Shown here piece after piece: positions 27,403 through 30,400 of a stretch of 64,000 nt of DNA; the first letter of the stretch is position 1, and the number at the start of each line of letters is the position of its first letter. Source of the DNA: Auanema rhodensis (Eukaryota; Animalia; Nematoda); contig OZ059899.1 in the NCBI GenBank assembly GCA_964057225.1, positions 4,836,001-4,900,000 on the forward strand, read 5' to 3'. The position numbers were made by a program, and so were the translations under genes. The notes beneath the pieces are model-generated. The model searched no databases. It saw only the letters and a list, made by a program, of their open reading frames with translations, and was not told where the DNA came from.

Positions 27403-30400
27403 TTACGCAATGGACTTCTTTTTGTTTGACTTCTTGGCGGAGTTAGCTTTTGACACGGAAGAGGCTACACTAGGAGTAGATGGCTTCACATCTTTCTCAT
27501 TTTTCTTAGTTCGTGGTTTAACTTCAGCTTCTCCCATTTCCTTCTCGATTAATCCGATCAAAGTATTGCAACGACGTTGTAATTCCTAAAACAATCTAAG
27601 TTCAAAAAATATAGAAAATAGATTAACCATAGATGTTCTACTTTTGATGAACCAATCGAATCTGAATTGTGGAGCCATTCTAACAGATTGCCGGAGCTCT
27701 TCATATACAGTTTCTTTATCAAAACCAAGTCGATGCAATTCGCATACAAGATATCTGGAAACGCATAAGCTAAGCAGTTATAATATTTCTAATTACCTGT
27801 CTTCTTCTTCAGTATACGTTTTTCCTTTATTTGTTCCATATGCAATACGCAATTGATGGAACGGTGCTTTGTACTTGGCAATTTTGGCATCTAATGCCTT
27901 TTTAACTGATTGGCGTCTCTGAATGCGTGCTTCTCCCTAGAACATCACCGTAACTCATAATAATAGAAATCAGAAATGAGAGGTACCTTCTCAATTTGGG
28001 CTAAAATTTTTTCATTTTCATGTAACTCATCGAATCTCTCCCAAAATATCTTGGCATACGCATCAACCTTAAATTGAAAATGTAATTTATAAAAGCCATG
28101 TGGACTAACCTCGCTGTAACTTTTATTCTCAATTTCACGAGAAATATTCTCGATATCAGTACGCCCATATTTTTCACTAGCCTGAAGATAATAGCACAAA
28201 ACTTAAAGTAAAAAAAAAACTACAAAAATATTGCTGGATATACAAGAGGATATAGGATATGAACGTTTGATTACGCAAACAATCATAAAATATCGTAAGC
28301 TGATAATCCAACGATTATATTGTAATACTTGGAAATAAATAATATCGAAACAGCTTACTCGAACAAAATGCTGGAAATCCCTTTTGGACCAGTTGGACAG
28401 TCCCAGCTGCAAAAGATCGTTCTTCTCATTCTGTTCATCTTCGGTGAGCGCTTCGGCATTATCAATCTGTTTCTGCTCTTCGCGCTGACGTTTCTCCGCT
28501 TCTTTAGTAGAACAATCTTTTGGCTTCTCAGCCTGAAATAAAAGTTTTAAACAAAATATAATCAGTATAAAAGCAGAAGATTATGAGATATTTAGAATTA
28601 GCTGTGGTATCACAATGGTTGCCTTGGAGATGGCATCCATATCTCTCGAAACTCCTCCCTTTCGTTCTCATTTGAAATTCACGAAAAAGCTTGCGTTAGC
28701 TGGCAGTACTTCTTCAATTATAACTATATCTTTCTCGTATGAATTCTGACTCACTTTCCGAAAGTGAAGAGCTAAATAATGGCTTCAACCATCGTACAAT
28801 ATTCATGTGTGGATTTATCCCAAAACGATGGCATAACAGGTATGAATTAAATGTTTTTTCTATTTTCTTGCACTCTTTACAGCATATTAACGAGAATAAT
28901 TCACGATTTACTACCCCACTTCTACGTTGCCTGCAATAACGAATCATGGACAGGAGAAGAACAATCGAAAGAAATCGTGTCAAATGCTGATGTCATGATC
29001 TTTGTGGTAAATGAATATACTTTAAACGATTCCAATTGCTTAAAAATGCTACAATACGCATGGCATTTGATGATTCCCATTGTTATGTTACGGCCTCCCA
29101 AAACTAAATTAGTTATAAGCAAGAGGGAAAATAAAAGAAAGGATATATCGTAAGATTGCACAGTATATATTTTAAAAAGCTCTGAGTTTAGTGTCGGAAA
29201 TGGATCTATAACTCGCATAGCTAAAGAGCCCATTGGCAGAAGAGACCCATCGATCCTAGACTATAATCTACTACAAGATGTTCTTCATGAGGTACTTCGA
29301 GCTTTATATTGCGGATAATATACATGTTATAAACCATTAAGGGTTACAAGAACTCAATTGTATACAACAGGGCTGAGCATGAAAAATCAATGATCAAACT
29401 ACACGATAAATTAGAGAAACTGTTTAATGTAGTTTCGGAACCATTCACACTGGAGAGACCGCCGTTTTTCCTTTCTCCATCGAAGAACTCTCAGCTGGTA
29501 GTATCTAGCAGAAGTACTAGCGAGAGGGGTAAGTCAAAATATAATAGTTTTAGAAATTACTGTTTTATAGAACAACCTACGAATGAAGCTCAAAGTCTTA
29601 ACTACCTAAATCTATCAGAAACAAAAGAATTAACTAAAGTAAGCAACAGAAATAAAAGAGTATAAGATTATTTTTGTATATACAGAAAACCCAGGAGAAC
29701 GAATGTAAAAAGAAAAATATGCATACGTTGCTGAGACAACATTCCAGTTGTGGATATACTAGTCAATTTAGCAGAGATTCATCTTTGGAACGACGAATGA
29801 GGTTATATTATTTGAAAATCAAATTTACTAATGATGTTTTCAGCTTGACTCATCTTAATCTTGACGATCTGTCAAATTACCAACAAACGCAATATCTTGT
29901 ATTTTCTCTTAAGGACGGCAACAAGAAACCAACCTTAATCAAATTCCCCGAAGATCTCATTGAAGAAAAATACAAAGAAGAAAGTCTTTGGGGATCGGAT
30001 ACAAGTCTTGAAGAGGAAGCTCAGGTTCAAATTATTCACAAAATGGATATTACAAAAACTATTACAGAACGCAACAAGAATAACTACGGGCATCGAAATC
30101 GATCTTGAAGATTCGTCTCCAATATCATCCCCCCCGCCATACATTGAACCCATATAGAATAAAATAAAGTATCACTAACCTTGTATCCTATAATTTTTCT
30201 ATAATGATATGTTTCACGATCTAATAGTTCAATTAAGCGACGAGGATAAAACTGAAAATCAAAAACTGCAGGTTGTTTAGGACGAGGAGCTTTAGATTGC
30301 TTTTCCACTGGATTTCCAATTCTCATAGCTTCTCGGAAATAAGCATCAACCTGAAGAATTAACGTGAAAAACGTCGTTCATTACTTAGTTCCATACTTGA

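Follow-up and report, generated by a model that had tools for sequence, protein, structure and literature searches.

Does an intron of the ISWI gene of the nematode Auanema rhodensis hold a second, antisense gene and, if so, is its product a TIR protein additional to TOL-1 and TIR-1, the only two listed for Caenorhabditis elegans (PMC3517549)? The locus lies in a 64,000-nucleotide stretch of contig OZ059899.1 (positions 4,836,001 to 4,900,000 of the forward strand, assembly GCA_964057225.1), which we call the window and whose own numbering we use throughout. A first-pass annotation of this DNA had read the nested gene as an overlooked, SARM1/TIR-1-like TIR pseudo-enzyme. We find an intact, spliced gene that is conserved across nematodes and orthologous to C. 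elegans F37A4.6. Its product is best explained as a stand-alone, divergent TIR protein that would not work as a canonical nicotinamide adenine dinucleotide (NAD)-cleaving enzyme (NADase) and would instead have a non-catalytic role in ligand binding or docking, exerted in few cells; we give this explanation as a whole a probability of roughly 0.6.

A spliced protein-coding gene lies antisense within an ISWI intron

We translated the three plus-strand frames of 28580-30200 and joined them at canonical splice sites, obtaining an intact gene with a coding sequence at 28739-30157 (Table 1). It comprises 8 exons totaling 1110 nucleotides (nt), or 369 codons followed by a TAG stop, and all seven of its introns run GT..AG and measure 42-50 nt. 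The exon count, the length of about 369 amino acids and the end coordinate, 30157, are as first annotated. The annotated start, 28615, is wrong: the ATG there opens a 44-codon open reading frame (ORF) in another frame, with its stop at 28749. The ATG at 28739 is conserved, the orthologue from Auanema sp. JU1783 starting at the same Met.

The antisense nesting in a 1.65-kb intron also stood up, the host intron spanning 1647 nt (28533-30179) and the nested ATG lying 206 nt from its low end. For RNA evidence we used 4 public runs of one study, labeled "RNA?", whose contigs are unstranded and whose depths are rough. The host splice joint, 28531>30179 (CT..AC on the plus strand, GT..AG on the minus strand), was present in all 4 runs at a depth of 63-287. 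On translation, the flanking exons gave ISWI segments, and the same segments flank the homologous intron in orthologues with SNF2, HAND, and SLIDE domains. The host, originally labeled isw-1, is an ISWI orthologue, distinct from the isw-1 gene of C. elegans.

For six of the seven nested introns, the contigs from the 4 runs contained plus-strand GT..AG joints at a depth of 5-11, around 3% of the ISWI depth. ISWI being a minus-strand gene, its pre-mRNA cannot be the source of these joints, and the possibility that no spliced transcript exists is thereby ruled out. The joint of the remaining intron, 29292-29341, was found in no RNA contig of the 4 runs; some contigs stop at 29292 and others start at 29340. 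The nested gene is a genuine, weakly expressed, protein-coding gene.

The gene and its antisense position are conserved in nematodes

The best relative of the spliced window protein is a 365-amino-acid protein of Auanema sp. JU1783, with 66.6% identity over the full length. An exhaustive HMMER search with exon 2 as the query found 25 proteins, and the orthologues collected come from Auanema, trichostrongylids and other strongylids, Heterorhabditis, Pristionchus, at least seven Caenorhabditis species, Mesorhabditis, Steinernema, Parastrongyloides, Rhabditophanes, Gongylonema, Plectus, and the enoplean Romanomermis. Identity to the Caenorhabditis proteins is ~40% over alignable segments (32-61% by segment and species). 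This distribution, from Rhabditina to an enoplean, indicates a family that is phylum-wide in Nematoda and, together with the close match in Auanema sp. JU1783, shows that the nested gene is not a chance reading frame.

Beyond this family, the exhaustive single-sequence HMMER search returned no credible relative, all matches with a named source being nematode, and when the domain alignment was used as a profile to look for relatives outside nematodes, only 4 more nematode proteins were added. The window's own protein is missing from a database of 5.8 billion clusters. Two multi-stretch HMMER matches, of 4092 and 1177 amino acids, were considered as multi-TIR proteins and rejected as repeat or composition artifacts; Pfam places LRR/PT repeats and a Por secretion tail in them. 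The automatic UniRef names within the family conflict with one another (TIR domain-containing, TIR-like, SEFIR, BRCT, Ras-associating, LTV1 homolog, and ORC subunit 1), and database names for this family are unreliable.

The nested arrangement is conserved as well. The gene lies antisense in the homologous ISWI intron in Auanema, C. briggsae, Pristionchus pacificus, and Nippostrongylus, and the same antisense position in one ISWI intron is kept throughout Rhabditina. In Steinernema carpocapsae, ISWI is without the host intron, and the orthologue is found 5.7 kb downstream on the same strand, right after a TRAF-like gene (zf-TRAF plus MATH); linkage to ISWI is retained there and nesting is not.

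The N-terminal domain is predicted to adopt a TIR-type fold

We carried out the fold analysis on the Auanema sp. JU1783 orthologue, which is numbered identically up to residue ~184. AlphaFold2, given this protein together with 29 family sequences, modeled residues 19-116 and 147-190 with a predicted local distance difference test score (pLDDT) above 90 and a hairpin at residues 291-310 with a pLDDT of ~84, the remainder being disordered; a model of the domain only had a pLDDT of 87 and a predicted template modeling (TM) score of 0.85. In the predicted domain, strand A (20-24) is followed by helix A, strand B (48-51), helix B, strand C (71-75), helix C (84-95), and strand D (100-104), and then, after a long disordered insertion, by helix D (147-159), strand E, and helix E. 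Five parallel strands A-E thus alternate with helices A-E in the three-layer alpha/beta architecture of TIR domains, and the elements fall where the first-pass annotation had paired them with SARM1. The strand B-helix B connection is short, with an invariant Asn52 and a frequent Trp; its pLDDT is lower, and we saw no box 2 (RDxxPG-like) motif in it.

Structural searches with these models favored TIR domains. In a Foldseek-independent VIA search of 48,161 PDB representatives, the top seven matches of the domain model were all TIR: RPS4 (14.0), C. elegans TIR-1 (13.4), SARM1 (13.1 and 12.6), Cat1 (12.3), RPP1 (12.2), and IL-18Rbeta (12.2). Lower in the same search came deoxyribosyltransferase (11.8), SEFIR (10.3 or less), and GTPases (~10). 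The full-length model scored 15.7 against RPS4 and 14.7 against TIR-1. In the AFDB fold clusters, matches that carry a name are nearly all "TIR domain-containing protein", with many rows unnamed, and the ESM Atlas led to TIR_2 whether searched by features (0.95, 177-192 shared) or by structure (TM 0.62-0.68). TIR domains therefore rank best in two independent structure searches, and SEFIR was the closest match neither by structure nor by profile. On the strength of these models, the domain very probably has a TIR-superfamily fold.

The best AFDB fold-cluster match, A0A6P8H7W9, is an unnamed protein of 464 amino acids that aligns over its residues 3-176 (E 5e-6, TM 0.65 by query, 17% identity). 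Its layout is alike, an N-terminal domain with a long tail, and it could be a relative outside the collected family.

The specific affinity to SARM1/TIR-1 that had been proposed did not survive these comparisons: RPS4, bacterial SPARTA, and animal TIRs score alike, all at 7-15% identity, and identity to the SARM1/TIR-1 TIR itself is 10-13%. Pfam matched no ARM or SAM domain in any of 29 orthologues, and with a domain starting at residue ~19 and the rest predicted disordered, the protein is not in the SARM1/TIR-1 orthologue group. A further difference from SARM1/TIR-1 is the long disordered stretch inserted in the nested family after strand D and before helix D. Identity to plant TIRs (RPS4, RPP1, SNC1) is 7-10%; unlike them, the nested protein has neither the catalytic Glu nor an NLR context. 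It also differs from the non-catalytic TIRs of MyD88, TIRAP, and the TeTIR of NPHP3, having no death domain or STAND ATPase and no box 2 motif that we could see, and possessing an invariant residue set of its own.

Helix C has no catalytic Glu, and conserved polar residues suggest a pocket

In TIR NADases, the catalytic Glu sits early in helix C. The window protein has no acidic residue at positions 84-94, and position 89 of helix C is Met. We take the plant TIR pattern W-C-L-x-E-L (WCLDEL) and the SARM1 pattern W-V-H-K-E-I to place this Met89 (NCLKML in the window) on the Glu, E642 in SARM1, and a linear offset from the RPS4 superposition lands within 2 residues of it. Across the family the position is not conserved, being Thr in nine sequences, Asn and Ala in four each, Ile and Cys in two each, and Met, Leu, and Tyr in one each, with Asp or Glu in 0/24. 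The column that we equate with the catalytic Glu is never acidic, in keeping with the original observation of Met at the ATG codon 29046-29048; the equivalence of the two positions is probable from the motif pattern. This Glu is required in SARM1, TEP1, and DNPH1, and together with the non-acidic column, this requirement makes canonical NAD+ cleavage unlikely.

Other positions in the domain are held far more tightly. Invariant or nearly so in 24 orthologues are Cys24-Gly25, Arg30, His32, Asn33, Asn52, Asn77, Glu78, Thr80, Asp83, Cys86, Arg104, and Pro106, with Asp83, His32, Asn33, Asn52, Arg104, and Asn77 conserved in 24/24 and Glu78 in 22/24. By the secondary structure of the model, not its coordinates, ten polar residues among them (R30, H32, N33, N52, N77, E78, T80, D83, C86, and R104) are found where strands A-D end on their C-terminal side or immediately beyond, in the C-C loop, or where helix C begins. 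Enzymes of flavodoxin-like fold, TIR and DNPH1 among them, hold their substrate or nucleotide at the C-terminal strand ends, and the conserved polar residues suggest a working pocket in the modeled domain. Given this invariant pattern, we prefer a ligand-binding or docking TIR with a live pocket over a decoy. Of the earlier label "pseudo-enzyme", the missing Glu stands; the label itself may be premature in view of the polar residues around the pocket.

The C. elegans orthologue has a probably truncated gene model

The top AFDB-SwissProt match of the orthologue model was P41884, "Uncharacterized protein F37A4.6", a C. elegans protein of 389 amino acids that aligns only from orthologue residue 102 onward. 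The full-length Foldseek search against AFDB-SwissProt was dominated by spurious alignments through disordered tails (root-mean-square deviation 20-40 Å) and was useful only for this match. F37A4.6 is the C. elegans orthologue of the nested gene, and its annotated model starts at a Met matching residue 102, leaving it without strands A-C and helix C. Other Caenorhabditis models behave similarly: the C. briggsae model begins MLRPPMTK, the C. bovis model MIRPP, and those of C. remanei and C. sp. 36 have as their first residue a Met that precedes ...NAD. These models, and apparently that of C. elegans, start at internal methionines and leave out anywhere between one third and over half of the domain.

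In C. briggsae, where the orthologue occupies the same ISWI intron and has rabphilin- and JAB-domain genes for neighbors, the missing part is still encoded in frame by the DNA preceding the annotated ATG. This DNA contains an intact first exon with an ATG, a GT..AG intron in the same phase as in the window gene, the motif LF.LGY...HN, and the segments from helix A to helix C. In the case of C. elegans, a published F37A4.6 reporter was made with a reverse "promoter" primer (PMC8446793) that reads AWNLSLPI-M across the annotated ATG, and AWNLSLPI is the conserved helix C/strand D segment (compare AWNLSLPILM in C. japonica); both published promoter primers are absent from the window. Judged by these reading frames, the C. 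elegans reference model very probably starts inside the domain, and this would account for a TIR having gone unnoticed in the C. elegans protein.

In the literature searched, F37A4.6 is mentioned in one study only. There, the protein was enriched in AFD-specific TurboID samples of C. elegans, and a reporter was weak and AFD-specific (PMC8446793). The description of the gene as overlooked holds only in part: the C. elegans orthologue is annotated, in truncated form, and some orthologues carry the UniRef name "TIR domain-containing".

The tail ends in a conserved module but not in a conserved PPxY

Residues 191-369 are 14% Ser and 15.6% Asp plus Glu and are predicted to be disordered save for the hairpin. 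Within them, four elements are conserved in the family, RRMS..L.D, TQYLVF...KP.LI.FP.D, WGSD[TS]SLEEE, and the terminal [ST]P[AP]PY..[LI]; this C-terminal module had no Pfam match and no credible ESM Atlas match. The Ser-rich, acidic tail ending in PPPY (residues 362-365) was correctly described at the outset. PPPY is confined to the window species and Auanema sp. JU1783, and 27/28 database orthologues have PAPY or LAPY, mostly PAPY, so that the P-P-x-Y of WW-domain ligands is not a conserved feature of the family. Recognition by WW-domain or NEDD4-family proteins would be lineage-specific at best, and the suggested turnover by NEDD4-family ligases is unsupported as a family trait.

A proposed role and its alternatives

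We propose that the gene encodes a cytosolic product in three parts: a TIR-superfamily domain, a disordered Ser/Thr-rich linker, and a C-terminal peptide module. The first part would be a stand-alone, highly divergent domain (residues ~19-190) in which a long disordered insertion separates strand D from helix D. Without the helix C Glu, it would most likely be no canonical NAD-cleaving enzyme, and its pocket of ten polar residues may serve non-catalytic ligand binding or docking. The third part, made up of the TQYLVF...KP.LI.FP hairpin, the acidic WGSD[TS]SLEEE, and the terminal [ST]P[AP]PY, may couple the domain to partners through these motifs. The protein would act in very few cells, which in C. 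elegans would be the AFD thermosensory neurons.

Several findings weigh against this explanation. The structure model is that of the Auanema sp. JU1783 orthologue and not of the window protein itself. Foldseek E-values against the PDB were weak (~1e-3 to 1e-4), with DNPH1 level with TIR, and DNPH1 gave the highest identity in structural alignment, 17-23% versus 7-15% for TIR. In Pfam, TIR_2 reached E=0.18 and 12.7 bits with exon 2, versus a 28-bit cut-off, and a TIR match at E<=1 was found in 0/29 orthologues; PDB sequences queried with the exon, with the full profile, or with the domain profile yielded no TIR chain and nothing relevant. No sequence profile placed the protein in the TIR clan, and among sequence-based searches only the ESM Atlas embedding points to TIR_2. 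The profile and structure check that the first-pass annotation had suggested was accordingly split, structure favoring TIR and sequence profiles not establishing membership. The match of Met89 to the catalytic Glu comes from motif alignment and linear offsets, not from a printed structural superposition, and the invariant Glu78 could be a relocated catalytic acid. Finally, the AFD expression is a C. elegans result, and the reporter "promoter" contained coding exons.

The only serious alternative to a TIR fold is the DNPH1/nucleoside 2-deoxyribosyltransferase (MilB/DNPH) branch, in which case the domain would be a module that binds a nucleotide monophosphate without the nucleophilic Glu. The DNPH1 family is a structural and mechanistic relative of TIR NADases with the same catalytic Glu, and it shares with the nested family a start of strand A followed by Cys-Gly, in addition to the identities given above. 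TIR nevertheless outranks DNPH1 in both VIA searches, with 138-141 residues aligned versus 125, and the AFDB clusters and the ESM Atlas lead to TIR_2, not to deoxyribosyltransferase. The Pfam deoxyribosyltransferase profile PF05014 gave E=0.12 and 13 bits versus a 28.8-bit cut-off in one orthologue only, and the Glu position is non-acidic. We consider this branch an unlikely assignment, noting that because the two families are related, the distinction is one of degree.

About as unlikely, in our judgment, is an enzyme that remains active through catalytic residues that have moved or are different ones, such as Glu78/Asp83/His32, and that carries out non-canonical nucleotide chemistry. The ten near-invariant polar residues represent unusual conservation for a mere scaffold, and the TeTIR precedent indicates that animal TIR-like families can use extra catalytic residues. 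Every characterized TIR and DNPH N-glycosidase, however, needs the helix C Glu, at a position that is free to vary here.

The role originally suggested, in which the protein would bind TIR-1/SARM1 heterotypically, as decoy or adaptor, in PMK-1 or axon-degeneration signaling and be turned over by NEDD4-family ligases through PPPY, fares worse and is very unlikely. The fold is no nearer to TIR-1 than to plant or bacterial TIRs, no canonical BB-loop motif is seen in the sequence, and the PPxY on which the NEDD4 part depends is absent from 27/28 orthologues. TIR-1 immune signaling acts in the epidermis or intestine, and the C. elegans orthologue is reported to be AFD-specific, not epidermal or intestinal. 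A generic flavodoxin-like three-layer fold (CheY- or GTPase-like) converging on TIR geometry is highly improbable, since TIR matches stand 3-5 Z units above such folds and span the whole domain, the ESM feature search returned TIR families only, and the helix C motif C-L-x-x-L fits the TIR pattern.

Features and neighbors of the locus

The coordinates of the nested gene, its domain, and the adjoining signals are collected in Table 1.

Table 1. Features of the nested gene and its host intron, in window coordinates
Feature	Position	Strand	Description
Exon 1	28739-28839	+	Met1 to residue 33 plus 2 nt; carries strand A; intron 1 joint in RNA
Exon 2	28883-29149	+	Helix A to strand D of the predicted TIR-fold domain; RNA joints on both sides
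Exon 3	29192-29291	+	Disordered D-D loop insertion and start of helix D
Exon 4	29342-29528	+	End of helix D, strand E, helix E, start of disordered linker
Exon 5	29571-29638	+	Linker; both joints in RNA
Exon 6	29686-29801	+	Ser/Thr-rich linker
Exon 7	29844-30024	+	Conserved C-terminal module, including the TQYLVF...KKPTLIKFP hairpin
Exon 8	30068-30157	+	C-terminal end and stop codon
Predicted TIR-fold domain	28793-29443	+	Residues ~19-190; exons 1-4 with their introns
Met89 codon	29046-29048	+	Helix C position matched to the TIR/DNPH1 catalytic Glu
Asn77-Glu78 codons	29010-29015	+	Directly after strand C; N 24/24, E 22/24 in the family
PPPY	30131-30142	+	Residues 362-365
Host ISWI intron	28533-30179	-	1647 nt; RNA joint and flanking-exon translation
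Upstream ORF	28615-28749	+	44 codons, out of frame, overlaps the true ATG at 28739
Two overlapping AATAAA signals	30158-30168	+	Directly after the stop codon; 11-16 nt before the ISWI exon

The two genes meet closely at the 3' end of the nested one, where the stop codon, the AATAAA pair, and the antisense ISWI exon boundary all fall within ~25 nt (30158-30180). With the AATAAA pair 11-16 nt from the ISWI exon, the 3' end of the nested mRNA must abut or overlap that exon in antisense. At the other end, the upstream ORF could damp translation if it is part of the mRNA; RNA contigs are colinear through it but may include ISWI pre-mRNA.

Around the gene pair, 13 kb of the window (22.6-35.7 kb) are collinear with the Auanema sp. 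JU1783 locus at ~70% nucleotide identity. The gene order around ISWI, which appears to be shared, runs from ribulose-phosphate epimerase through GIPC-like and lipase genes to ISWI with its nested gene, followed by Pcc1 and a GRIP-domain gene, as taken from the Auanema sp. JU1783 annotation; the GIPC-like gene is without a DNA match in the window. The protein identities, the collinearity, and the absent promoter primers set the window close to Auanema sp. JU1783 and apart from C. elegans. The ISWI neighbors in the window and in Auanema sp. JU1783 differ from those in C. briggsae.

Discussion

Relative to the literature searched, three aspects of this gene are new: a phylum-wide third TIR-fold family in nematodes, its concealment in Caenorhabditis by truncated gene models, and its nesting in one ISWI intron across Rhabditina. 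The stable nested gene pair is a useful example of one antisense position kept in the same ISWI intron across Rhabditina, and the models of C. elegans, C. briggsae, C. remanei, C. sp. 36, and C. bovis make a clear case of truncated reference gene models hiding a domain.

A bolder reading, which we regard as doubtful, is that the family constitutes a third phylum-wide TIR-fold signaling protein of nematodes, missed because of the F37A4.6 start, whose pocket of His32/Asn33/Asn52/Asn77/Glu78/Asp83/Arg104 binds or processes a nucleotide signal without the canonical Glu in AFD-type neurons.

To our knowledge, work on worm innate immunity and axon degeneration assumes that TOL-1 and TIR-1 are the sole TIR proteins. 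If our explanation is true, a phylum-wide conserved extra TIR-fold protein, with its own invariant pocket and cell-restricted expression, would be a new candidate node in immunity and axon-degeneration signaling in worms.

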